Part shown: positions 1 through 57,437 of the stretch, piece by piece
How the letters are laid out: every line of letters starts with the position of its first letter
Numbering within the stretch: position 1 is the first letter of the stretch
Assembly: GCA_965235115.1 (NCBI GenBank)
Contig: OZ249451.1
Location: forward strand, 20,274,001-20,338,000
Direction of reading: 5' to 3'
Origin: Laetmonice hystrix
Taxonomy: Eukaryota
Length of the DNA stretch: 64,000 bases
Position numbers and translations under genes: made by a program
The notes under the pieces: model-generated
Seen by the model: only the letters and a program-made list of their open reading frames with translations
Told to the model about the DNA's origin: nothing
The model's database searches: none

Positions 1-975
1 TGTATTAAAGCAGGTCTGAGGGTCGAACACAGGCGTGGGGTTTGGGGGTTTGCGTGCACTGGAGAAACTTGATTGCGGGAGATGGGGGGGGGACTACCAA
101 TGAAAAGCCAATCGAGGTCATGATAGGATGTGGTCGGAGTGGGGGGGGGGCAGTCGGGCAAGCGCCTGTACCCTTCCCCAGTAATCCATACGATCGACTG
201 GCCGATGGCAGGCATAAGCTGAAGTTTAAGGCTCGGGCCATCGTTGTAATAGTAGCCACTGGTCGCCCGCACGGCGGCTTTGCCAGGGGCTGGGATTTCA
301 GACTGTCACTTATGGGCTCTGAGTGCGAAAACTGGGCCATTGCCAGGAAACGCAGCCAAAACTAGGCCATCGCTCCGCTCCAGGCAATGGATGCACCACT
401 GGCAACCAGGCCAAACGTTGGAACGTCACCAATCGTCTGCCTGCCCTTAACCCACGGAAAATGACGGGAAATGGCGGCAACTGCGAAGTGAGCAGCTATG
501 ACAAAGACTTCCATAAAAAGCGATCCTCTTGATGTGTAAAACTAGATCGTTAAAGGTTCGAAACGACATGGCAGACTGCCTTGTTTCTTTCGTTTTGTGA
601 AATATGTAGGTCTGATTCCGAGGAGAAAAATGTGAAAACCTGATCGGGTTACATTATAAGTGTTAGATTTTGGTCGAATTGATCAGTATACAACATACAG
701 TGACCCTCCTAACCTGTACAGCTTAAGGCCAAAGTCATTAGAACGAAATGATCGAATAATGTTGACATGATGAGGCACGAGTCAATATGTCATATATAAA
801 GTTATACAATGAGGTATATATAAATGAGATCCAGTAGTCCCAGCCACGCTGGCTTGGATGGAAATGTGGCACTGTGAAGGTGACTTTATATGCTCGTCTA
901 ACATCACGTTGGAACCTCTATTTTCATCTTCGATGGGAACAAATATATGCTAGATTACTCAATAACAAAGACAGC

Positions 976-1247
976 CGGAGACCGACAGAGACAGAGACAG
1001 ACAGACAGAGCGACACATACAGACAGACAGAGAGACACACAGAGGACCGAGAGAGACAGAGACAGACAGAGACCGAGAGAGACAGAGACAGACAGACAGA
1101 GCGACACATACAGACAGACAGAGAGACACACAGAGGACAGGGACAGACAGAGACAGACAGAGACCGAGAGAGACAGAGACAGACAGACAGCGACACATAC
1201 AGACAGACAGAGAGACACACAGAGGACAGAGACAGACAGAGAACGAC
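976..1247 (+). repeat. GACA/GAGA compound microsatellite running into an assembly gap
   Basis: Repeated gacagagacagacagacagagcgacacatacagacagacagagagacacacagag blocks. Confidence 0.95.
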
Positions 1248-1434
1248 NNNNNNNNNNNNNNNNNNNNNNNNNNNNNNNNNNNNNNNNNNNNNNNNNNNNN
1301 NNNNNNNNNNNNNNNNNNNNNNNNNNNNNNNNNNNNNNNNNNNNNNNNNNNNNNNNNNNNNNNNNNNNNNNNNNNNNNNNNNNNNNNNNNNNNNNNNNNN
1401 NNNNNNNNNNNNNNNNNNNNNNNNNNNNNNNNNN
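1248..1434. other. assembly gap (N run)
   Basis: Ns in sequence. Confidence 1.
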
Positions 1435-1906
1435 CGATCAGAATACTCTTGCCGCTGTTACTGTATTGTTTAGTTATGCATGCCAGCTACCTGTGATGAC
1501 ATTAAATAGACTTCCCCAACATTATAACATTACGAACACTGCGTCCCGCCTGGCCCTGGTACGAGTATCGGCCTATGTCCACATAATTTGCTCTTGCCAG
1601 TAATAGTTCTGTTTGAGGAGATATTTAATACTCGAGATGACAATAATTATGATCGATATAACATTGAGTACCCTGCAGTCCATGTTAGCAGCTGTAGAAA
1701 ATACTCACAAGATGACACAAAACGTGCCACACATATTATAATTTTACATTGTGAAATTTAGGACCCCCCCTTCCCCACCAAACCGAATGTAGGGGGGGGG
1801 GGTACTAATGATGTTTTTGGGGTGTGGCTATTATTTTCTATATCTTTTAAAGATTAAGATTGAAACTTAAGTCTTGACTTGCTTGCATTTATAAATATAT
1901 TTATAC

Positions 1907-1998
1907 GAATGAGTGAATGAATGAATGGCTGGACAGATAGATGAATAAATGAATGGATAGATAGGTGAATGGCTCAATGGATGAATGAATGAATGAAT
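1907..1998 (+). repeat. degenerate (GAAT/GGAT)n microsatellite
   Basis: gaatgagtgaatgaatgaatgg...ggatgaatgaatgaatgaat. Confidence 0.8.
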
Positions 1999-2050
1999 CT
2001 ATAAAGCAGTAACGCCCACTTGTCTGTAAACGCCTCGTGACCAGGTTGTA

Positions 2051-2850
2051 CCAGAATCAAACAGTGCCAGGCGTGTGGCACTCATTCTCTGAACCACAGT
2101 CAGACAGCGCCTGGCGTGTGGCACTGTGGCACTCGTTCCATGAACCAGATTCAGACAGCGCCAGGCGTGTGGCACTCATTCCATGAACCAAAATGAGACA
2201 GTACCAGGCGAGTGACACTCATTCTATGAACCAGAATGAGACAGCGCCTGGCGTGTGGCACTCATTCTATGAACCACAGTCAGACAGCTCCAGGCGTGTG
2301 GCACTCGTTCCATGAACCAGAATGAGACAGCGCCAAGCGTGTGGCACTCATTTCATGAACCAGACTCAGACAGTGCCAGGCGTGTGGCACTCATTCCATG
2401 AACCAGAATGAGACAGTGCCAGGCGTGTGGCACTGTGGCACTCATTCCTTGAACCAGAATGAGACAGCGCCAGGCGTGTGGCACTCATTCCTTGAACCAG
2501 AATGAGACAGTGCCAGGCGTGTGGCACTCATTCCATGAACCAGAATGAGACAGCTTCAGGCGTGTGGCACTCATTCCATGAACCAGAATGAGACAGCGCC
2601 AGGCGTGTGGCACTGTGGCACTCGTTCCATGAACCAGAATGAGACAGTGCCAGGCGTGTGGCACTCGTTCCATGAACCAGACTCAGACAGTGCCAGGCGT
2701 GTGGCACTCATTCCATGAACCAGAATGAGACAGCGCCAGGCGTGTGGCACTCGTTCCATGAACCAGACTCAGACAGTGCCAGGCGTGTGGCACTCATTCC
2801 ATGAACCAGAATCAGACAGCGCCAGGCGTGTGGCACTCGTTCTATGAACC
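2051..2850 (+). repeat. 43-bp minisatellite, ~18 copies, intronic
   Basis: Unit gagacagtgccaggcgtgtggcactcattccatgaaccagaat; some copies carry an 8-bp gtggcact duplication. Confidence 0.95.
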
Positions 2851-4130
2851 AGGCACTCTTGCCTCTTTTAGCCTCAGGAAATGTGCCTCGTTTTCGCACC
2901 TGCTCATGGGCACAGCGTTTGTCTGCTCTTTGGGCGCCATCGGTGAATAATTCACAGCCAAGATCCCCCGTCATCCATCATCGCTCTCAACATGATGTGG
3001 TAAATGTTCAATTTGGCAGTTTTTTGAGCAACGCTAATTTGATAAGTCTTTGTCTTTGACTTAACAAAAAAGAAAAATGAGTTCCGAAGAAAAACATCAA
3101 ACGACACAGAACGGCAGGTGCGTCCATTTTGAGACGTTTAACAAGTCGTAGACAAGTTGGTGCTTCAACGCCTCAATGGCCTGTATGCCTCCTAGTGCCT
3201 CTATAGGTTTGCCTCTGTACCGTAACAATAAGGGCGCCTTGAGGCTGAACTGCTTGCAGTTAATCAGCTCGGCCCTCGCCAACGTGTTGCTCAAGTATGT
3301 GTCACGAATGACTAACAGGCCATAAGTGAGACTTGCCCGATAGCGACGTTGTCTGATGTTGACCTCTGATCGTCCTATGTATCTGCTAGAACGTTTTGTG
3401 TTCGGTCAATATCAGTGCCCGTCTTTAGACGTTATCAATGGCTAATCGATAGCAACACTCGAATGGTGACAGCACCACGGCCTATAGACCCTCCACAAAT
3501 ACGTATTTTTTGCCCTGTTGAAAGACAAGTACCTGAATGAAAGTTACGCTTGCCGACGTGGAGATGTTTGTAATCTGTTGTTATCGGAGATCAACGCTTC
3601 GCCTTATCCGGTCGCCACACGACGTCTGTAGGTGCAATCCAACAGAGTTCTCATATATAGATAACAGGATTATAAGGAGTTCGCTTGATTGACGTGTCGG
3701 TAAGGGGGTCTGCTCTCAAGTACGAGCTATTAAACTCCTTAATTTACAACAGAGCTCGGGTTTGAAGAGAAGTACGTTTGTCTGGAGTCGAGTACTTGAG
3801 TGGGAGTGCGACTTTATATAATTAAACGATATTAATATTCGTGTCAGACGGCTTAAGGTCGTCGCGCCATACTTATTTTGGATTGAGAATATCTTGATCG
3901 GATATCTTTAAGGATAATTACCGATATATAATAGAGGTATACATGTTAGCAGTAGAGCACTATGTTCCTGTTTATTGTTATACTAATAAGTTATGGTTAT
4001 TAAAGTGAGATTTTGGGAGCTGTATTTTAATGCCAATGTTAAAGGAACGAACGAACATGGACTCATCATTATAACATGTAATAATTTTCATATTCTTTGT
4101 TTTCGTTTTTTCTCCCCCTCATTTTTCCAG

Positions 4131-4414
4131 ACGGTCTGAATGGCGTGGAAAGCAAGCGAACACGAACCTCGTACACTAGGCACCAAACGCTGGAACTCGA
4201 GAAAGAGTTCCACTTCAATAGATACCTTACCCGCCGACGAAGGATTGAAATTGCACATGCCCTCAATCTCACAGAGAGACAAATCAAAATTTGGTTTCAA
4301 AACAGAAGAATGAAGTGGAAAAAGGAACACAAATTGGCACATTTGGCGAAGTCACAAGCGCAGAAACTCGACGCGACTGGAGCGCCCATTTTAGACATGG
4401 ATAGAAAATCGTGA
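4131..4414 (+). CDS. Hox5: Hox5/Sex combs reduced homeobox exon (last coding exon; homeodomain 4151-4330)
   Basis: Translates as (D)[93 protein letters not shown]. This is an Antp-class homeodomain; the N-terminal arm RTSYTRHQ and the post-helix KEHKLAH match lophotrochozoan Hox5/Scr as I recall them. Phase-1 splice acceptor at 4130; stop TGA at 4412-4414. Confidence 0.93.
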
Positions 4415-5370
4415 AATGTTTATGATAGAATCTAACTGTCCTCGAATATAAACTGTATACTATATAGCTGATATAAATACTGTGTTGGAGTGACAACTCG
4501 AGGGTTGTTCGTAAAAAGTCTACACATTGCTTCAAACCAAGCTGAATCGAGGTGACCCAAAAAGATCCTCGGTCTAACTATACTCTGTTGAGATTTTACA
4601 GTTTACTGTCGTGGTAATGTATAGGTATAGCTGCACAAGTGAAATCATAATTGTGTGGATGGCGAAGTCGAAAACGAAACATGTTATCGCCTCAAAGTGC
4701 GATGGTATAATAATACACGGAACCAACTAACGTTTTGCCCCAGAGCGAGGCTGGCAGGGACGGAAGCGGAAATGCGTAGGTCTTTGCGATTATGTTCTTA
4801 GATCTGCCCAATGGCCGCGCTCGACACAAGCTTGTGTTGGCTGGCCGAACTTTTACCGACCCTCGTAACCGAACTCTAAACTGGACCTGCTGTTTAACTA
4901 GGCTGCTAGAAAATTGTCTCCCTCTTTGACGACACGCCAGTTATGGTGAGTCAACGTTCTGTACCGTATCGTAAACTACGGTTCGAAGTCTCGGACGTCC
5001 GAGAACAGCTAGAGGTGATTGCGAGAAGTCGTGATGGTGATGTGATGAAAGTAACTGCTATTGTGACGTCACATCCTGTATTGTGATGTTAACGCTGGTG
5101 ATTAGATTATGGTGGGTTTTTTTTGCGAAAGAAGTTGTTCACCTATTAATGTAGTTATAGTAGGAAAAGTAAAAAACAAAAACAAGAAAATCTCACGCTT
5201 CCAAGTCGAAATTCTGGTTACCCGGCGTCCAGGCTAGAGGTCCTCAAAACGAGGTCACATGACTTTGTGATAGTAAGTGTTTCATATTGAAAGTAACTTA
5301 TATACCATAGGATGATGTATGACGATGGTGATGAAGATGATAAAACAATGTAACGTTGGTGTCACAGACA

Positions 5371-6372
5371 CTACAGGGACAGGGTAAAACTGGACGCTGA
5401 GGTGAAAAACTGGGACGGAAGACGAGGCAAGCTGAGTTAGAGATGGATAGATTTAATGCTAACATTATATTGTGTGGTATATAAGGTTATGATCTCTGTG
5501 ACAGAAATAGTGTCTTTCCTCTCGTGCATTTCTCTCGATCAGTTGGTTCTAGTGTTTTATCTGACAGAGCACCTATAGGAACAAAATACCTACTCAAGTG
5601 CTAAGGATTGGTTTTGCCCATAGCACCACTTCTGGTCGGAAAAGCATTTATTATTTTTCATTTTTTTTCCACCTCCAGAATTGATTCCGATTGCAGAGGT
5701 TGATTTGGCACATAAAGCCGTCTAAATCAGGCTTACGTCTTGAAGACTATGGTATGACTCGAACGAGACCATTTTAATGTACAGGCACAGAAATGGTCAC
5801 GCATACAGTATAGAGTCCTCGTCCGCAATGGTCGGGACTATAAAACGTTAGAGAACTAAGTCCTACCCTTTGTGGGACTATAATGAGGTTTCAGGGTATA
5901 TAATGAATTTCATGAAGAGGTCATTTACACTATAAAAGATGACGATATCGCAGTTTTGTTTTTCCCTCTGTGTTTTTTAAAAACAATCTTTTTGACATGC
6001 TGACGTTGTGCCGGCAAACAGGGTAGATTGCACGCAACAAGTTGGCAACCAGGGTAACGTTACGCGTGAGAAAATAGTTCTACTGATGAAAAAAAAATCT
6101 ATGTAAACAACACATACCAATACAAATCAACAAATCGTAGACATTGACAATATTTCATCGTATACTTTTTGTGCTATTCATCAAACAATTAGTTTTCCCA
6201 TGATGGGACCCATTTTTTGACTGTAGTTTTTGAATTATTTTGGAGGAGTTTTCTCCTAGTTCATTGTAGACTTGTAGATATATGCATCCCCCGTATCCTC
6301 CCAGCTAACGCAGCTTTGGGGCATCAGAAAAGAAAGTGAGGCACTAAAACGTCAATAGGTACAGTCAGGGTA
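5371..6372 (+). promoter_or_regulatory. cluster of miR-10-family seed-match sites
   Basis: ACAGGGTA at 5379-5386 and 6018-6025; CAGGGTA at 5892-5898, 6050-6056 and 6366-6372; TACAGGGA at 5372-5379. Confidence 0.6.
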
Positions 6373-6872
6373 AAACTCGCCTTCTCAATCTACACGGTGA
6401 AGCGAATTTTGACAATCCACCCAAAGCGTTAGTAACACTCGCCGACCGTTTTTGGTCCGCGGTTTTTGCAACACGCAGCCTGAAGGAAAGGGTAACTTTA
6501 ACTAAGGCTCAAAGGGTACATTTTAATATAGGTAATGATAATATTAATGGCGATGATGATGATGATGATGATAATATGATTGGATGTTTGTAGTCGCTAC
6601 ATAGTTTTCTATATTTATTAACAATGTTGAAAGCTCTTTCGAAGTGGATGTTCGTGTAGTAGCCGGCGATTATAATCCTAGGATGAGTCGGTCTATACCC
6701 ATGTCCCCGGATATTATGTGATGTTGTTGACACCCCTAACGTTTCCACCGTTGTACTTCCCACTTTAACCCAAGGACCGGTATATTCTGCTACAAACTTC
6801 CTCCCGTGTGAAGGACTCCTGTAAAACTCTAGTTCTCCCATGGGACTCGCTGGTCTAGAACTCCTGAAGAAT

Positions 6873-7060
6873 GATATCAGAACCTTTGGAATCAACACTT
6901 GATTTCAAGGATATCAGAGTATTTGGAATCAACACTTGATTTCAAGGATATCAGAGTATTTGGAATCAACACTTGATTTCAAGGATATCAGAGTATTTGG
7001 AATCAACACTTGATTTCAAGGATATCAGAGTATTGGGAATCAACACTTGATTTCAAGGAT
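6873..7060 (+). repeat. 37-bp tandem repeat, 5 copies
   Basis: Unit gatatcagagtatttggaatcaacacttgatttcaag starting at 6873, 6910, 6947, 6984 and 7021. Confidence 0.95.
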
Positions 7061-7182
7061 TTGTTGAAGGACATATAAGTAGATTTTGGTGCTGCTCGAT
7101 GGGCCATATGTATGTTGGTCCCACAAAAAGGTAACAGTAGGGTACGAGAGAAAAACATGTTCAAAGGGTATATTTTATCTCA

Positions 7183-7188
7183 AATAAA
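7183..7188 (+). terminator. candidate polyadenylation signal for Hox5
   Basis: First AATAAA after the Hox5 stop codon; weaker variant hexamers occur earlier. Confidence 0.35.
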
Positions 7189-7620
7189 CGTTCGAGTCAA
7201 GCGAAGCAAATCATATTAGATAAATTGTATCGTAAATAATTTAGCACCACTTTGACACAGCTTTAGGGTTTAGTCTTCATTTCAACTAGGGACGTTAACG
7301 GGGAAAAACCGGGAAAACAACGCACATGTTAACTGAGTTATTTTTGTATGTTTTCAAGTGAATGGGTTCTCTGGCTATAATATGTCTGTGTCCAGATCTT
7401 CCTTGCTCGCATGTAGCCATACTTCAGTGACACTACATGATCATTTTGTACTTCATTGTTGTGATTCGTGTACCGTGGAAGTCGGAGAACTACAGAAGGA
7501 AACGGAATGATTTCGTCTCGGTCGACTTGGACATATATTTGTATGTACATGTATATGCGTCTTGCTCAGAGCGACGTGGAGAATGTAACGCACAGGTTTA
7601 TTGTATTGGTCGTAGAGCTG

Positions 7621-7650
7621 ATGATGATGATGGTGATGATGATGATGATG
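7621..7650 (+). repeat. (GAT)n microsatellite
   Basis: atgatgatgatggtgatgatgatgatgatg. Confidence 0.9.
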
Positions 7651-9433
7651 AAAGAGTATACAAGTATTATTATATACCATACGACAGGCGCGAAGGTCAT
7701 GGTCATTGACATATCTATTAAGATGATGTTGTTGTCGTCCTTAACTATTAATTAACACATTTGCTATACTACAATTTTAAACTGACTGATGATTATATTA
7801 TACTGCCACTTTGGAAGGAGTCGACATGTTCTGCAAATCCTGCAGAAGCAGTACAAATCGTGATTGTGACCCCCCTCCCTCCCAATCAACCCCCTTTTTT
7901 GTCAAAAAGTTTCCCTTTAAACTAAAGACTGTCCTCGCGCGATACCGAAACCCGAGGGTACGTGTGTCTGTGAAAAATGTCTCCCATTGTCAAGTACATA
8001 GCCTGTACATAAATGTAGGTATAGCAGCCCTATGTATTCCTGTTGTATAAAGTTTACAATAAACAGTCATTGCCATAACCTAGAGACTTGTATCATTAGT
8101 AGTAGTAGAACTTGGGTAACATTAGTAGTAGAACTTTGGTATCATTATGCAGTAGTGGTAGACTTTCGTTTTCTCGACACAAAATAACGTTCTGTGAAAT
8201 ATGAAACTATCACAAATATATGTAAGACGTTCCGCTGCCCCCCCCCCCCCCAGCCCAAACGTAAGTGAACACTTCTGAATAATTCTGGACATTTCTGTTA
8301 TCTTTACCGAGGGGGGCTTTGAGGTTTTGTGCTTACCATAATTATTCCTTACTTGTCAAAATGGTCACAAAAAGAAATCAAGTGAAAATACAAATCATCG
8401 GGTCTTTTAATACGTAGGTGTTAAACTCATACATTATGTAAACAGGCGTTTTAACATAGTAACCTACTGGTATTTGGGAAATAATGAGTTTGTGGATGGC
8501 CACCCAAGTTGAAGCTATTTATTAGTATTAGGCCCCTATTTATCGACACTGAAACAAAAGTCAACGGCCTGTTTCTCTTAACAGCTTCAATTTTTTTTGC
8601 ATAATATTCAAATAATTATGCTAAAATATGTAGGGTTGGATTAATCAAAACCCAAGGTGTCAGTACTCACAACTAGTCCAGTATAACTTTTAGAAAACAA
8701 CCCCGACAAAAATACCATCACGAGACAATAAACCCTGTCTGTACCCAGGTTTTCTCAAAGGGGCCCAAGAACTTTTTTGGGGTTCTTTTGTTATGCAAAA
8801 TTTAAAATGAAACCTCTGGCGTTCCATAATAACAGGGTGTTCGACTTAAAATATACAGCTGGCGCAGCAGTGAAAAGACGTTTATAAATAGATGTCCAAC
8901 TGATTTTAACAGTGTTAAGGGTCTAGCATCTCGCTTGTCAGAAACCCTACTGAGAAATTGCACCTTCTTCTTTAGATTTGTTGTTCTATGCAGTCAAAAA
9001 GGTCACAATAATCCATAAAAAAATATTTTACACTTCAGCTTCTTGTCATGAATGAGAGTGGCCACCCGCACCGGCCAATTCTATAATTGTAGGTGTTTTA
9101 CCTGATTATCGTGTTTGTAAAGTCAAGTTTGTAAAACGAAGTTTGTAAAGCGAAGTTTCACCGCCATAGAAAGCGCCATCTCGGTCACCACTTGGTGGAC
9201 GATGACAGAACACCCGCGCCCCCAGTGGCCACTGTGGTAGTAGGCCACCATGGACATGGCGTTCTCAAGACGCTCCGAGATTCCGTGACAAGACTTTCGG
9301 CAACTTACTCAGGCTGGTTTTATTTATTTATTTTTTCTAAATGATTTTTTTTTTTCGATAAAAAAAACATGCTTGGTTAAATAAAATATTAAATGAGAGG
9401 ATGTCAATTCCCACAGAATAACATTTTTTTTCT

Positions 9434-16600: not shown

Positions 16601-18801
16601 GACAATAATGTTAGAGAGCCTGTAAACAAATATAGCCTAGAGGAATATACTATCCCTGGACTTGTGTGGAATTGATAAAAGTATGCGTTTGTAAGAATTC
16701 AGGGTCATTGTGTTGTTTCGGTTTGTTTTAACGAAGGGCACACGTTAAGAAGTTGCCAATATTTTAAAACCTTAGCATTATGATATTGAAGGGTTGTAGG
16801 ACAATGAGCTGGGCGAGGTATCTAGATTATCTAAGCAATCCGATTGCCTTCTCTATGAAGAAGGTCAAGTTATAAGCAGGGTAATCTGTATAATTATCGC
16901 CCTCATATAGACGAACATCCCTTGATGAGAATTATCCACCGCTCGGTTCTGGGTCTAATTACATTGTGTCTTCATCTCAAGGCCACAGCAATTAGTGCCA
17001 TGACGAAAGGCAAAGGTTGTCTTTCACTTCGGGTCGGAGAGGCCGCTCCACTCTGCCACATGGGAGAACATCTCATGGATACTTTATGAAAACACAAAGC
17101 GAACTGTACAAGATTTGTTACGTATTTCCATTCATCATATCTTTGTATACAGCATTGGGGCGAAGGCCGACTCGGCAACAGTTGGGATAAATGTGTGCAT
17201 GTGGTGAGCTTGCTGAAACGATGGCAGCTCCGGGTGCGCGCCCACTTTTTGCGCCCTTCATTATCATCGTCTGTACCTCCAAGGGAGAGAATCGGGATGC
17301 GTGGCCATGGCCTGGGACGAGCCCAGTTGACTGCCAGGCTCGCCGACCGAAGAAATTCATCACATCTCCCGGCCCCCCACACCCCTTCACCCCACCCCAC
17401 CACCAAGAACCCCCGGGCCTGAGATGATACGGGACACCCTCACTCATTATCGCTCAGTTCCTGCGGGACGGGCTGCCCATTGCGCCGTACTCTGGCGCTT
17501 ACACCATTTTTTTACTCCCCCGGTCACAGTATGGGAACCGTTTTATCAATATTTCACGCTCGCCTGCCCGGCACCGAGGTACAAAAGCTGCAGGGAAAGA
17601 CAGATGGTTCGTTGATACGTACACGTGGGATTTGTTTCTGTATAGAACAGGATGAATGCCCCAAACATGATGCATCGACGAATGCATAGTATTAATTTAA
17701 ACATGGTGGTTGTATGGGACTGATGCCTCTTCATCTTCATAGCGCCAAGATCTTTGCCCCCACATTGATCGTCCTTTGACGATGCTGAGCAAGTCTTGTA
17801 ACAACAGATTTGTTTTCGTATTCCTGTCGACACCATAGTGGTTTCGTAGGACCGTTTATAATCCTTAGGATGGTAGCACGGCCGAGGCAGATGGTATACC
17901 GCAGTGCATGAACAGCCTGAACAAGCCTTCAACAACCATGCCACAGGTTACTGGTGTTTGGTGAACGATTTACTGAAAGAAAAATATGTCTGTGATAAAA
18001 GGACTGAAGATATTGCTCAATTCAACACATGTTAATGTGGTTTCCCGTCCGCGTTTGGCGAAGGATAGTTTGCAGCCTTTGCTTTGCTTTTAGAACCTGG
18101 CAGCGACTTAGGAGGGTGATATTCTACACCCAAACATTTTCACACCGAAACCAGCACCGCCCCCACCTTTTTTTTATAAACCATTCCATCTCTCTATCTA
18201 CCCTCCACAATGCACTGGTCCATTTCCTTGTTTTCTCCCCAAACCCTGACGTCTGTTAACGTTCCCCGACGTCCATGATGGATTGTTCAAAACTTGATCT
18301 GATTTCCACCGACCTCTCTGTAACCAACCTTTCGTTTTGACCTGTCGTTTTCCTGTCAGACAGTGAATGCCTCCCCCGTGAGGGGCCCGACTCCCAGCGG
18401 AGAAAAGAAACTACAGATGCTGACTGACATCTTAACTTGGGGTCAGCTGCGTATAACAGATGACATATAATTACGCAATTACGTTTTAGAAGATTCCTTA
18501 TTGTGTGAGATCTTTTCGCTCGTGGCCCTGAGGTATATTACCGATATGTGTGGTAACGGAGGAGGGATGGCTCTGCGCGGAGAGTCTACAAATAGGAGTC
18601 GTGGTTGTAAGAGAGTGATTGAAGCCAGACCTTTCAGTACTTATACAACTAACATTACTGTAAATGTCAATATCACATGGAAGGCATCCTCTCATACACA
18701 TGTCGTGAACGGACACAAAGTGATGGATTGTAGTCATTAGTGTCCAGCCTGTCCAACTGACTCAAACTACGGCCCTGACATCTTCCGCATTTGAGCTCCA
18801 A

Positions 18802-35975: not shown

Positions 35976-38900
35976 TATACGTATTTATATAATATTGTAT
36001 TGTGAATTTAAACACGCTGTCATAAACTATTCGGAATATAGTGGAATAGCTACTGCTAGATCTCACATATACTAGTGTTGGATTTCAACTATTCAAATGT
36101 GTGTATTTTCTTCAAAATAGTTAGATTTTTTCAAATAAAGAAAAATAAGTGGTTCTCTTTTTTTTTGGGGGGGGGGGTTGTTTTTTAGGTAAGAAATTTG
36201 ATTTGACCTCATTATCCGTATTAATGTTTTTATTTCAATCTATATTTCAGACAAGTTAACAATTGCCTCTTCTGGGGACGAGAAGCCGAAAAGTCAGTTA
36301 TGAAATCATTTGCGCCTCAAAATATCTGAGCGCTTCAGCATCTGCATTGCCTATAGAAGGCAACCCACTCGGGAATATGTGTATTATACGCGTTTTCCAA
36401 TGCATTCCCTCAGCAACTGAAAGAAACCTTTCTTGATTTCAATCCCATAGCTGCTATCACCACTTGATCTCACTTGAAGCGCCAAGGAAAAAGAAGCGGT
36501 CCTATTTAGCCGCCTTGTTTGACACCTCCTCCCTAGCGTGTCTTGTCAAAGGCTCTACGCAAGTCTAGGTATAAAACGTCTTGGCAGACCGTATTCAGTC
36601 CGCCTAGCGTGATCAACGTGTTCCATTCGGCGGGAAATCTCTGCGGACCAAACGCTCGGTAGCCGAGTCCTGGCAGAGACAGGCTTGAAGAGAAGGGCTT
36701 ACATTGCCTACATCAGATAGCTGGCTATGAATACCCCCTCCTTCTCAATGAGACCATTGAACCGGCATGAATCCCCCCTCCCCCTCCCCTCCACCGTCCC
36801 CCACACCGCGCCCGCCACACCCAGTGTATATTATTAGTACGTGTTGAAGATTTCAAGTCCTGCAGGGTATCCGCTCCCATATAAAACCTAAGGTGTCTGC
36901 CGTCTCGGCCCTTTCCTACTCTTGACCCTTCCCTCACACTCCTTTACCCCGACAATCAACACCTCCCAGTCGCCCACACTCCCTTTTTGGAACAACACAC
37001 AATGGACAAGGCCAATAAAAACGCGCCTTGCCGCGGGAAGCAGCGGGGCCAATTGGTTTATGATCCGAACGGCCGACCTTTTTAAAGGTTAGCGGCCAAT
37101 ATAGCTCAAATTGACCCCGCCGACTAGAGTCCCGTCGGCAAGGTCTGAACTGAATTGAAGTTTATATGTAAAGACATATGTGGGTTGAGGGATAACTTGG
37201 CAACTTGGCAGACCGATATAGACTGATGCACAGTTGGGTGGAGATGTGAAAGCGAATGTAATATAAGAGTTGGTCATAAATAAAAACTTTCAGTTGTTGA
37301 CATCAGTAGAAGTCTGTCTAGGTTTACAAGACTTATTTACTTATGTTTTTTGTGAGCACATTATGTCTGTAGATATACAGTGTTTTGAAGTCGACTAGTC
37401 GACTTTAAATTAAAGTATGTCTTCATTTGATGCATATTATGATCGTGTCCCAATAGTAAACGCAGATTATTATATTCAGTTTCCGCCTCTCGTACTTCTA
37501 CATAAGAAAAGAGTATATTCGATCATACGTCTCCAGTGTTTAAGATATTCCACTTATCGCATGTGGGGCATTGGTCATTGATAGATACTATATAGATAAA
37601 GTCGCAACAGGTTATACGTGAGACTATCACTGAACACCCTCAAGGCCGGCTCGGTTCCTGGCATGATAATGTCATATATTACAACACCACTCGGCCACTT
37701 TGACACCTCTAGCACCAGAACACTTGTCTCTTCCCCTCCTTGCCTTGTATCTTGTCAAGGCTGTGTCAATACGCCTCAGCTAGTCAAACACAGTCTCTCG
37801 TGGGGTCATGGTAGACGGGTCAGAATTCGCTCCCGAGTGGCACTTGTCTCAAAGAAAAGGACATGAACATGAGAGGTCCAAAGAAGACGCCGACAAACTT
37901 CACACGGGTGCCGACAGTACGTTAAAGAAGCAGCGGACCCTTGAGACAAGAGACCGACACCTAATTACAGCACTAATCGGATTTTCAGTGCGTCGGCAGG
38001 TGCTGTGAAGTGTTCCTAGACCGGACCAGAGCAGGGAAGGTGTCGGGTTGGTGTATGGGTGGTGTGGTTGGGGTGGGGTGTGGGTGTTGTCCCAATCAAA
38101 CATTTGGTCTCTGGACTCGGCCAGACGGGGGAACACTGGCCGGGTAAACTACCAGCACAATTTCTGTTTGGTGGGGTGGCGGGGAAGGGGGGCACGTGCG
38201 GCTATACATGGGGAATACCCTGTACTCCATGCCCTTTCCTAGAACAGTTCATGAAGAAAAACTCCCCTTCATTATTATCTTCCTATGATTCCCCACATTT
38301 GCCTCTGAAAAAGCACCACATGACTTTAGCATTGTTTTCACTATAGTAATAAACGCATTGTTATATTTTACCCTCCTAACTGTCTATAGCAGCTACATTT
38401 TCTAACAGGGTTTCCTATAAGATATCAGATGGTAATAATGTTACTGCTTTAAATCGACATGAATGTATTGCATTGGTTAAAAAATTATATGCACAATTAT
38501 TCAACTGAAATATCAGGGTATTTTATTTATAATATAAAATATGGGGAAGAAAATAAAAAGTACAACCGTATAGAATAAGAGGAAGCCGAACACAGCCAGT
38601 GCCATCAAACTCTGTGGCTTCCATAGAATGTCCCTTGCAGTAACTGACCACAGGACCCTGGGTACCTGTTGATTGATTCCCTCCCCACCGGCCCAGAGAG
38701 AAGACAGCCAGGAAGGCAGGGCGGTCCATTGTCCACGTGACAAGACAATTGGAGGGACTGTGGCAGACGATGGCGTGAAATGACGGGACGAACAATGGGT
38801 TCATATGGGCGAGGTGTTGGTCAGTAAAACGGTGATAATCGGGCGGTCAGTCGGACAGACGGACGTGAGAGATAGACGGACAGACGGACGTGACAGATAG

Positions 38901-39286
38901 GCGGGTATAGACGGTCGGACAGAGGGGCTGGACACTTGGAGCGAGGAACAGGGTACAAAATGACGTTTTGTACGGGTACAAAACGTTTTGTACCTAACAT
39001 CCTCACCCTAATCTCTATCTGATCATGACGTAATACACCGCCTCCATTCTATTATATAGGTTAGACTAAACTCATGATGAAATAAATACACTTTAATCCA
39101 AATTAGATGAAGGTAATTGTTTTTTTCTTTACATCTTTTTATAATAAATTCAATTTAGTTCACATTTTACAGCGTGAACTTCCTTTGATATGCATGTTTA
39201 CATGCTAAAGTTCTCTTGAGTTTATATAATAATATATTTTTGGGGTTTGCTTTTTAACGTGGTATTTTGTTGCATCTTATTTTGTT

Positions 39287-54121: not shown

Positions 54122-54896
54122 AATCTTAGATCACGATCAGTGGATGACCTTCATGTACAATCTTAGATCACGATCAGTGGATGACCTTCATGTACAATCT
54201 TAGATCACGATCAGTGGATGACCTTCATGTACAATCTTAGATCACGATCAGTGGATGACCTTCATGTACAATCTTAGATCACGATCAGTGGATGACCTTG
54301 ATGTACAATCTTAGATCACGATCAGTGGATGACCTTGATGTACAATCTTAGATCACGATCAGTGGATGACCTTGATGTACAATCTTAGATCACGATCAGT
54401 GGATGACCTTCATGTACAATCATAGATCACGATCAGTGGATGACCTTCATGTACAATCATAGATCACGATCAGTGGATGACCTTCATGTACAATCATAGA
54501 TCACGATCAGTGGATGACCTTCATGTACAATCTTAGATCACGATCAATGGATGACCTTCATGTACAATCTTAGATCACGATCAGTGGATGACCTTCATGT
54601 ACTGAATCGTAGATCACGATCAGTGGATGACCTTCATGTACAATCTTAGATCACGATCAGTGGATGACCTTCATGTACAATCTTAGATCACGATCAGTGG
54701 ATGACCTTCATGTACAATCTTAGATCACGATCAGTAAATGACCTTCATGTACAATCTTAGATCACGATCAGTAAATGACCTTCATGTACAATCTTAGATC
54801 ACGATCAGTAAATGACCTTCATGTACAATCTTAGATCACGATCAGTGGATGACCTTCATGTACAATCTTAGATCACGATCAGTGGATGACCTTCAT
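54122..54896 (+). repeat. 37-bp minisatellite, ~21 copies
   Basis: Unit aatcttagatcacgatcagtggatgaccttcatgtac. Confidence 0.97.
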
Positions 54897-57437
54897 TGGT
54901 GTTAGCCGAGCAGGGTCTGTGGTTGTAGTTACTGACTGCCAGGCCGGGTTTGGAGTTAGCCGAGCAGGGTCTGTGGTTGTAGTTACTGACTGCCAGGCCG
55001 GGTTTGGTGTTAGTCGAGCAGGGTCTGTGGTTGTAGTTACTGACTGCCAGGCCGGGTTTGGTGTTAGCCGAGCAGGGTCTGTGGTTGTAGTTACTGACTG
55101 CCAGGCCGGGTTTGGTGTTAGCCGAGCAGGGTCTGTGGTTGTAGTTACTGACTGCCAGGCCGGGTTTGGTGTTAGCCGAGCAGGGTCTGTGGTTGTAGTT
55201 ACTGACTGCCAGGCCGGGTTTGGTGTTAGCCGAGCAGGGTCTGTGGTTGTAGTTACTGACTGCCAGGCCGGGTTTGGAGTTAGCCGAGCAGGGTCTGTGG
55301 TTGTAGTTACTGACTGCCAGGCCGGGTTTGGTGTTAGTCGAGCAGGGTCTGTGGTTGTAGTTACTGACTGCCAGGCCGGGTTTGGTGTTAGCCGAGCAGG
55401 GTCTGTGGTTGTAGTTACTGACTGCCAGGCCGGGTTTGGTGTTAGCCGAGCAGTGTCTGTGGTTGTAGTTACTGACTGCCAGGCCGGGGTTGGTGTTAGC
55501 CGAGCAGGGTCTGTGGTTGTAGTTACTGACCGCCTGGCCGGGTTTGGTGTTAGCCGAGCAGGGTGTGGTTGTAGTTACTGACTGCCAGGGTTTGGTGTTA
55601 GCCGAGCAGGGTCTGTGGTTGTAGTTACTGACTGCCAGGCCGGGTTTGGTGTTAGCCGAGCAGGGTCTGTGGTTGTAGTTACTGACCGCCTGGCCGGGTT
55701 TGGTGTTAGCCGAGCAGGGTGTGGTTGTAGATACTTTACTGACTGCCAGGCCGGGTTTGGTGTTAGCTGAGCAGGGTGTGGTTGTAGTTACTGACTGCCA
55801 GGCTGGGTTTGGTGTTAGCCGAGCAGGGTCTGTGGTTGTAGTTACTGACTGCCAGGCCGGGTTTGGTGTTAGCCGAGCAGGGTGTGGTTGTAGTTACTGA
55901 CTGCCAGGCCGGGTTTGGTGTTAGCCGAGCAGGGTCTGTGGTTGTAGTTACTGACTGCCAGGCCGGGGTTGGTGTTAGCCGAGCAGGGTCTGTGGTTGTA
56001 GTTACTGACTGCCAGGCCGGGTTTGGTGTTAGCCGAGCAGGGTCTGTGGTTGTAGTTACTGACTGCCAGGCAGGGTTTGGTGTTAGCCGAGCAGGGTCTG
56101 TGGTTGTAGTTACTGACTACCAGGCAGGGTTTGGTGTTAGCCGAGCAGGGTCTGTGGTTGTAGTTACTGACTGCAAAGGCCGGGTTTGGTGTTAGCCGAG
56201 CAGGGTCTGTGGTTGTAGTTACCGACTGCCAGGCCGGGTTTGGTGTTAGCCGAGCAGGGTGTGGTTGTAGTTACTGACTGCCAGGCTGGGTTTGGTGTTA
56301 GCCGAGCAAGGTGTGGTTGTAGTTACTGACTGCCAGGCCGGGTTTGGTGTTAGCCGAGCAGTGTCTGTGGTTGTAGTTACTGACTGCCAGGGTTTGGTGT
56401 TAGCCGAGCAGGGTCTGTGGTTGTAGTTACTGACTGCCAGGCCGGGTTTGGTGTTAGCCGAGCAGGGTCTGTGGTTGTAGTTACTGACTGCCAGGCCGGG
56501 TTTGGTGTTAGCCGAGCAGGGTCTGTGGTTGTAGTTACTGACTGCCAGGCCGGGTTTGGTGTTAGCTGAGCAGGGTGTGGTTGTAGTCACTGACTGCCAG
56601 GCCGGGTTTGGTGTTAGCCGAGCAGTGTCTGTGGTTGTAGTTACTGACTGCCAGGGTTTGGTGTTAGCCGAGCAGGGTCTGTGGTTGTAGTTACTGACTG
56701 CCTGGCCGGGTTTGGTGTTAGCCGAGCAGGGTCTGTGGTTGTAGTTACTGACTGCCAGGCCGGGTTTGGTGTTAGCCGAGCAGGGTCTGTGGTTGTAGTT
56801 ACTGACTGCCAGGCCGGGTTTGGTGTTAGGCGAGCAGGGTCTGTGGTTGTAGTTACTGACTGCCAGGCCGGGTTTGGTGTTAGCCGAGCAGGGTCTGTGG
56901 TTGTAGTTACTGACTGCCAGGCCGGGGTTGGTGTTAGCCGAGCAGGGTCTGTGGTTGTAGTTACTGACTGCCTGGCCGGGTTTGGTGTTAGCCGAGCAGG
57001 GTCTGTGGTTGTAGTTACTGACTGCCAGGCCGGGTTTGGTGTTAGCCGAGCAGTGTCTGTGGTTGTAGTTACTGACTGCCAGGCCGGGTTTGGTGTTAGC
57101 CGAGCAGGGTCTGTGGTTGTAGTTACTGACTGCCAGGCCGGGTTTGGTGTTAGCCGAGCAGGGTGTGGTTGTAGTTACTGACTGCCAGGCCGGGTTTGGT
57201 GTTAGCCGAGCAGGGTGTGGTTGTAGTTACTGACTGCCAGGCAGGGTTTGGTGTTAGCCGAGCAGGGTCTGTGGTTGTAGTTACTGACTGCCAGGCCGGG
57301 TTTGGTGTTAGCCGAGCAGTCTGTGGTTGTAGTTACTGACTGCCAGGCCGGGTTTAGTGTTAGCCGAGCAGGGTCTGTGGTTGTAGTTACTGACTGCTAG
57401 GCCGGGTTTGGTGTTAGCCAAGCAGGGTGTGGTTGTA
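54897..57437 (+). repeat. 54-bp minisatellite, ~47 copies
   Basis: Unit gttagccgagcagggtctgtggttgtagttactgactgccaggccgggtttggt, with 52- and 49-bp variants. Confidence 0.98.

Follow-up and report, generated by a model that had tools for sequence, protein, structure and literature searches.

The window, a stretch of 64,000 nucleotides, holds on its + strand the second exon of a Hox gene followed by a long untranslated tail. The preliminary description had assigned the gene to a lophotrochozoan Hox5. The translation and the relatives of both exons agreed with this and narrowed the assignment, such that the gene at 4131-4415 is, on its sequence, the Hox5/Scr of an annelid. The parts of the gene are as follows.

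C21:20264006-20264639, outside the window: Hox5/Scr exon 1 (MSSYFVNS...QIYPWMRRMHSGN; YPWM)
4131-4415, + strand: Hox5/Scr exon 2, encoding the homeodomain and the C-terminal tail and ending in the TGA stop (4413-4415; translation)
4416-8030, + strand: Hox5 3' UTR, ~3.5 kb, unspliced, covered by RNA contigs of run X4, with the 3' end between ~7931 and 8027

Exon 1 lies 13.5 kb 5' of exon 2, about 9.4 kb ahead of the start of the window, and its GT donor is in phase with the exon 2 acceptor at 4130. The best named relative of exon 1 was Alitta virens Hox5, with molluscan Hox5 proteins scoring lower, while the relatives of exon 2 were the Hox5/Scr proteins of lophotrochozoans and arthropods. The gene belongs to a cluster of ten Hox homeoboxes, which all lie on the + strand of contig C21, from 19.52 to 20.63 Mb, in the order Post2, Lox2, Lox4, Antp, Lox5, Hox5, Hox4, Hox3, Hox2 and Hox1 according to our own reading of the homeodomain signatures.

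The extent of the tail was defined by run X4. The X4 contig that starts at 4130 extends upstream to take in the final 30 bases of exon 1 and, because it joins exon 1 to 4130, X4 contains spliced cDNA, though no run was catalogued as RNA. The contigs, which are strandless and come from one run with no tissue given, tile 4130-7924 without any splice joint within. There was no X4 depth in the intron (3300-4087) and zero depth from 8028, while within the tail the depth climbed from 5-14 to 94 in the 3' direction. The rise fits a 3' bias, and a second transcript could also be hidden in it. The distal tail is probably transcribed on the sense strand, the alternative for this part being antisense Hox transcription. 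The first AATAAA past the stop is at 7183 and another, at 8058, is already 3' of the last RNA contig. A coding gene hidden in the tail was considered and rejected, since 4416-8030 has only short open reading frames. The UTR also contains a 37-nt unit repeated about five times (6870-7060) and GAT-rich microsatellites at ~6535-6585 and 7612-7660.

The words in the tail that match the seed of miR-10, or share the hexamer AGGGTA with such matches, are listed below.

5372-5379, + strand: TACAGGGA, 8mer for a hypothetical 3'-shifted (ACCCUGUA-start) isoform; single occurrence, overlaps site 1
5379-5387, + strand: site 1, ACAGGGTA, canonical 8mer, also CAGGGTAA, the 8mer for the 5'-shifted seed UACCCUG
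5892-5898, + strand: site 2, CAGGGTA, positionally conserved (aligned to L019)
6018-6025, + strand: site 3, ACAGGGTA, canonical 8mer
6050-6057, + strand: site 4, CAGGGTAA, 31 nt past site 3
6366-6373, + strand: site 5, CAGGGTAA
6489-6495, + strand: AGGGTAA after GAA, a 7mer-A1 in the shifted register and member of the (G/A)AAAGGGTA(A) class
6513-6518, + strand: AGGGTA hexamer (AAAGGGTA) within a 17-nt word repeated at 7161
7139-7144, + strand: AGGGTA hexamer
7165-7170, + strand: AGGGTA hexamer (AAAGGGTA)
7955-7960, + strand: AGGGTA hexamer close to where the RNA support ends

The tail has the heptamer CAGGGTA on its + strand at five positions (5380, 5892, 6019, 6050 and 6366), and two of the copies are part of ACAGGGTA 8mers that start at 5379 and 6018. 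In the canonical register, that is against UACCCUGUAGAUCCGAAUUUGUG, the five are two ACAGGGTA 8mers and three CAGGGTA 7mer-A1 sites, all with a perfect match to miRNA bases 2-7, while in a register shifted by one base the same sites comprise three 8mers and two 7mer-m8. The + strand count thus confirmed the five canonical matches of the preliminary description in number and type, and all five precede the AATAAA at 7183, as it had said. It had also counted about six further CAGGGTA on this strand; the rest of the window (~59 kb) has exactly six, at 16877, 33548, 36863, 38514, 38949 and 63708. In the intergenic region between Hox5 and mir-10, three + strand seed matches fall within 550 nt (38405-38955), namely ACAGGGT at 38405, CAGGGTA at 38514 and ACAGGGTA at 38948. 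Further downstream, 54122-57437 is occupied by two adjoining satellite arrays, a 37-nt unit present 21 times and a 54-nt unit present 48 times; the 54-nt unit accounts for most CAGGGT hexamers of the window, none of which is a 7-mer site.

The claim that the sites reside in a transcribed 3' region was supported by the strandless X4 contigs, which are continuous from spliced exon 2 to ~7.9 kb and cover four of the five sites. Sites 2, 3 and 4 (5892, 6018 and 6050) are inside the contig 5878-6135 and site 5 (6366) is inside 6275-6538. Site 1 (5379) has no RNA contig and falls in a 68-nt hole (5323-5390) between two contigs of low depth. Heterozygous variants at 5315-5339, just before site 1, would break k-mer contigs. 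Since the X4 contigs reach ~7.93-8.03 kb, an end of the transcript before ~5370 was not borne out.

The five sites sit 1.0-2.0 kb into the 3.5-kb tail. The spacing of 31 nt between sites 3 and 4 is within the range reported for cooperative sites. The duplex energies of the sites, -13.7 to -19.6 kcal/mol, were within the background of seed-only contexts, and extra 3' supplementary pairing was therefore rejected, the energies being no better than that background. As a consequence of the mid-UTR placement and the absence of unusual 3' pairing, a modest effect per site is predicted. The tail also has one 7-mer match each to the predicted 3p-arm seeds of canonical mir-10 (CGAATTT, 6403-6409) and of the paralogues (AACTGAG, 7331-7337), which is within chance.

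The density of the sites was compared with that expected from composition. The tail (4416-8030, 3615 nt) has five CAGGGTA, while in 20,000 dinucleotide-preserving shuffles the copy number averaged 0.145 and did not exceed 3, and the Poisson probability of at least five is about 5e-7. When tandem and simple repeats were masked, CAGGGTA tied with AAAACAA as the commonest 7-mer of the tail, these two being the only ones to reach five copies. Chance or composition was rejected by the shuffles and by this ranking of all 7-mers. A dispersed or tandem repeat as the carrier of CAGGGTA was likewise rejected, since the repeat families of the tail are without sites; the single repeat overlap is a 17-nt word that touches the 3' flank of site 5. 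The shorter word AGGGTA occurs ten times on the + strand of the tail (0.77 expected) versus once on the - strand, and the 3.6 kb on either side have none on the + strand.

The downstream regions of four other probable annelid Hox5 exon 2 loci (L019, L015, L014 and L016) and of the mollusc Lottia (L020) were compared with the window. Two further loci, L017 and L018, have sequences that stop at the stop codon and so provide no tail, and the contigs of other genomes that were reached by way of exon 1 end within the intron. The CAGGGTA counts were as follows.

L019, exon 2 identity 90%: two in the 1.65 kb past the stop
L015, exon 2 identity 86%: five within 3.6 kb past the stop, two more further out
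L014, exon 2 identity 91%: three within <=3.6 kb past the stop
L016, exon 2 identity 79%: none, also none within 4.9 kb
Lottia (L020), mollusc: one site past the stop

The four annelid loci together have 10 CAGGGTA versus 0.95 expected (P 7e-8), with multiple sites in three of the four. The antisense strand of the relatives has none, and the only copy in the 3.6 kb upstream, among the loci tested, is that of L016. The tails of the relatives cannot be aligned with the window apart from short islands. One such island matches 5836-5944 of the window to 1907-2015 of L019 (E 2e-8) and keeps CAGGGTA in register, such that 5892 in the window corresponds to 1962 in L019. A ACAGGGTA word follows the conserved site by ~100 nt in L019, and its counterpart in the window lies 126 nt past site 2. 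Conservation in orthologous tails, proposed earlier as a check, was thus found both as position (5892) and as recurrence in three of four annelid loci, which is the preferential conservation expected of miRNA target sites. The palindromic, CRE-like word TGACGTCA at 5064-5071, within GTGACGTCA, also has similar words downstream of Hox5 in L019 and L015, and TGACGTC ranks high in the list of 7-mers common to the annelid Hox5 tails.

An unbiased ranking of 7-mers over the four annelid tails, four simple-repeat words aside, was led by AGGGTAA, CAGGGTA and AAGGGTA. The counts of AGGGTA on the + and - strands were 13 versus 0 in L015, 7 versus 0 in L016, 5 versus 0 in L019 and 3 versus 0 in L014. 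Two shorter tails of ~1 kb, in L035 (a spliced transcript contig) and L036, have two AGGGTA each and no CAGGGTA. The enriched core common to the tails is therefore AGGGTA(A), confined to the sense strand and to the tail.

These counts bear on the possibility that the words act in DNA, as transcription factor sites of a downstream enhancer, or that they are a chance or compositional cluster. Intergenic Hox DNA is rich in enhancers and the conserved TGACGTCA word is nearby at 5064. However, the strand asymmetry is extreme, with 38 AGGGTA on the + strand versus 1 on the - strand when the five longer annelid tails are summed, the enrichment ends where the RNA ends, the shuffles never gave five CAGGGTA and the pattern recurs across species. 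An explanation at the level of DNA or of chance is consequently most improbable.

Another explanation accepts the words as real seed matches, kept by weak or past selection and without measurable effect on Hox5 output in vivo. The seed-only character and mid-UTR position of the sites would suit it, as would the precedent of Drosophila, where the predicted pairing of miR-10-5p with Scr, though conserved among insects, showed no effect detectable in the embryo, and mis-expression of miR-10 left Scr without detectable change (Lemons, Pare and McGinnis 2012, PMC3290615). However, multiple sites recur in tails that have diverged beyond alignment, which indicates continuing gain or retention under selection, and we consider a silent set of sites distinctly unlikely.

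The candidate guides were sought as hairpins in the cluster, and six were located.

C21:20342220-20342292 (L002:1508), + strand: canonical mir-10 hairpin with the exact TACCCTGTAGATCCGAATTTGTG, fold of -40 kcal/mol
C21:19731716, 19853961, 19914256 and 19953899 (L004, L033, L003 and L034), + strand: four paralogue hairpins with the identical mature arm TACCCTGTAGAACCGAGCGAGTG, between Lox2 and Lox4
L024:2464, + strand: sixth hairpin, CACCCTGTAGAACCGAGCTTGTG, 2.2 kb 3' of the Antp stop

All six have the seed ACCCUGU and folds of -33 to -40 kcal/mol, and all six lie within the Hox cluster, on the strand of the Hox genes. The canonical copy is 4.2 kb past the end of the window, 64 kb 3' of the Hox5 homeobox and 42 kb 5' of the Hox4 homeobox. 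The statement that miR-10 is encoded next to Hox4 accordingly held in this genome, the canonical sequence being exact and on the same strand between Hox5 and Hox4. Rfam at gathering thresholds gave no match within the window; mir-10 just outside scores 44.4 versus a cut-off of 47.5. Annelid Hox clusters have been described with multiple Mir-10-P1 paralogues, some of which keep the seed and some of which are 5'-shifted (PMC12257675; PMC3394115), and the six hairpins are consistent with the annelid Mir-10-P1 expansion (PMC12257675).

The register in which the words would be read was examined by counting site classes over seven tails, 18 kb in all. The enrichment by class was as follows.

Canonical register (seed ACCCUGU): 8mer 21x; 7mer-m8-only 1.5x; 7mer-A1-only 18x; 6mer-only none seen
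Register one base 5' (seed UACCCUG): 8mer 34x; 7mer-m8-only 12x; 7mer-A1-only 18x; 6mer-only 6x

Only the shifted register was enriched in every class and in the order expected from site strength. The register of the sites predicts an effective guide that starts one base upstream of the textbook miR-10, and on these counts a start of the main effector one nucleotide 5' of it (N-UACCCUG, seed UACCCUG) is about as likely as not. The preliminary description had instead read 5371 (CTACAGGG) as an overlapping 8mer for a 3'-shifted isoform, and site 1 as a dual-isoform site. The position required correction, since the ACCCUGUA-start 8mer is TACAGGGA at 5372-5379, and, as it shares one base with the canonical 8mer, the two could not be occupied at once. 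The dual-isoform reading itself was not supported: TACAGGG is present once in the tail and is not enriched, and the site classes over the seven tails indicate a shift of one base 5', in the opposite direction.

Two sources of a shifted guide can be envisaged, a product similar to Mir-10-P5/miR-1991 and a 5' isomiR from the posterior paralogues. Mir-10-P5, a 5'-shifted miR-10 relative of lophotrochozoans, starts one base 5' of the ancestral cut (PMC12257675), and the sequenced miR-1991-5p of the snail Biomphalaria begins CUUACCCUG (PMC7328434). A search of this genome for the snail-type miR-1991 sequence gave only noise. A 5' isomiR is also possible because a T precedes TACCCTG in all five U-starting hairpins, including the four Lox2-Lox4 paralogues. 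If, on the other hand, the miRNAs start only with UACCCUGU, the canonical reading would be favored and the AGGGTAA sites that have no C would be left unexplained.

Among 31 AGGGTA cores in four tails, 12 follow an A, and nearly all of these read (G/A)AAAGGGTA. The (G/A)AAAGGGTA(A) class can be a canonical 8mer mismatched at base 7, a 7mer-A1 of the shifted register or a separate element, and the (G/A)AAAGGGTA extension is not accounted for by seed pairing alone. A miRNA with the seed ACCCUUU, which would account for AAAGGGTA, was rejected, as the genomic TACCCTTTAGAACCG loci (L031 and L032) have no pre-miRNA-like fold; a search for the ACCCUUU pattern gave more control hits than real hits, and literature k-mer searches for a miRNA of this seed returned nothing relevant. 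The (G/A)AAAGGGTA(A) class recurs in tails of Hox5 and Antp from several annelids, at times as a tandem triplicate; it is present at 6489, 6513 and 7165 in the window, at +336, +1100 and +1107 in L024 and at 13670-13700 in L015.

The extension raises the possibility that the reader is an RNA-binding protein with a motif of approximately (C/A)AGGGUA(A), often GAAAGGGUAA, and that the complementarity to miR-10 is coincidental. Such a protein could explain why AGGGTA is more widespread than the canonical seed match, being present without CAGGGTA in L016, L035 and L036, and why the copies preceded by A have a conserved AA/GAA extension, which is not expected from miRNA pairing; an enrichment confined to the sense strand of the tail fits any reader of RNA. 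However, the core is perfectly complementary to bases 1-6 of a miRNA of which the cluster has six copies, the C that pairs with the next miRNA base is over-represented ahead of the core (14/31 versus a C content of ~18%), A follows 18/31 of the cores, and the site classes obey the hierarchy of the seed rule. We know of no protein with (C/A)AGGGUA(A) specificity, and consider this explanation unlikely.

Repression by miR-10-family miRNAs is the reading that we prefer. The Hox5 3' UTR is probably a multi-site response element through which Argonaute and miR-10-family guides would repress Hox5. Argonaute loaded with such a guide would pair by the 5' seed to the CAGGGTA/AGGGTAA words and, where those microRNAs are expressed, the pairing would lower the stability or translation of the Hox5 mRNA. 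The guides could be supplied by the six same-strand hairpins of the cluster, the canonical copy between Hox5 and Hox4, the one 3' of Antp and the four between Lox2 and Lox4. From the sequences we infer the expression of the miRNAs, their 5' ends, Argonaute binding and the repression of Hox5.

The ~3 kb past the stop of each of the other Hox genes of the cluster were searched for the same sites.

Hox1 (L029, C21:20632500-20642499): three ACAGGGTAT 8mers in the canonical register, at +273, +1220 and +2064 past the stop
Lox2: two canonical sites and two further AGGGTAA; one ACAGGGTAT word is present
Antp: two canonical sites and AAAGGGTAA words
Lox5: one canonical site, with a second at +3.66 kb
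Lox4: one site, ACAGGGTAT

Hox2, Hox3, Hox4 and Post2 have no sites within ~3 kb past the stop. By analogy, this pattern resembles the vertebrate link of miR-10 to Hox1 and Hox3, and it would also fit posterior paralogues that repress more anterior genes. Hox1 is anterior to all copies of the miRNA. Hox5 is anterior (3') to the five posterior copies and on the 5' side of canonical mir-10; consequently it does not follow the rule of anterior targets with respect to the canonical copy, but does so with respect to the five posterior ones.

A broader and more tentative scheme can be drawn from this arrangement. Hox5, with Antp and Lox2, might be mainly under the control of 5'-shifted miR-10 paralogues (seed UACCCUG/UUACCCU) duplicated in the posterior half of the cluster, giving a miRNA brake that resembles posterior prevalence and is convergent with vertebrate miR-196 and arthropod iab-4, while the ACAGGGTAT 8mers of Hox1 would preserve an ancestral bilaterian link. 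A miR-10:Hox5 link in an annelid, together with the conserved site in insect Scr, would, if true, date that link to the protostome ancestor. We regard the scheme as possible but doubtful. The dense, sense-only and recurrent sites of annelid Hox5 would in any case provide comparative support for an old link between the miR-10 family and Hox5 outside the arthropods.

miR-10 is the most conserved microRNA of the Hox cluster, but only a small number of its Hox targets have been tested, chiefly Hox1 and Hox3 of vertebrates. In a full-text literature search, no account of miR-10 target sites in the Hox genes of annelids or other lophotrochozoans was found. The closest parallel is the miR-10-5p:Scr target site of insects, which had been suggested earlier by others (PMC3290615). 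The annelid and insect cases involve an orthologous pair, a miR-10 of the Hox cluster and the 3' UTR of Hox5/Scr, and in both a site is conserved while the neighboring UTR diverges. They differ in that insect Scr has one site with a shortened seed (bases 3-7) and a long 3' helix, whereas the Hox5 of this annelid has at least five sites that pair through the seed only, without notable 3' pairing, and the AGGGTA core is present ten times.

In zebrafish, miR-10 represses hoxb1a and hoxb3a (Woltering and Durston 2008, per PMC3394115). The annelid cluster is similar in having seed sites for a cluster-embedded miR-10 in Hox 3' UTRs, the three canonical 8mers of Hox1 included. However, the vertebrate targets are anterior (3') to mir-10, whereas annelid Hox5 is posterior of canonical mir-10 and anterior only to the extra paralogues. 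Repression of more anterior Hox genes by posterior miRNAs of the cluster is established for miR-196 on Hoxb8 and for iab-4/iab-8 on Ubx (PMC3394115), and the Lox2-Lox4 position of the miR-10 paralogues has been compared with that of miR-196 and iab-4 (PMC12257675). In keeping with these systems, four miR-10 paralogues reside at Lox2-Lox4 and the more anterior Hox5, Lox5, Antp and Lox4 carry sites; unlike them, the annelid miRNA is a duplicated miR-10, not a novel family, and its action on these genes would be a predicted one.

The likeness to Mir-10-P5/miR-1991 is one of register. AGGGTAA and CAGGGTA, the two most enriched non-repetitive 7-mers of the four annelid Hox5 tails, are canonical sites for Mir-10-P5/miR-1991 because these miRNAs start one or two bases 5' of UACCCUG. 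The difference is that no miR-1991-type gene was identified in this genome, where the shifted product could be an isomiR of the paralogues. The targeting of Hox mRNAs by the miR-10 family is already known from other systems, and what annelid Hox5 adds to them is a testable twist in register.
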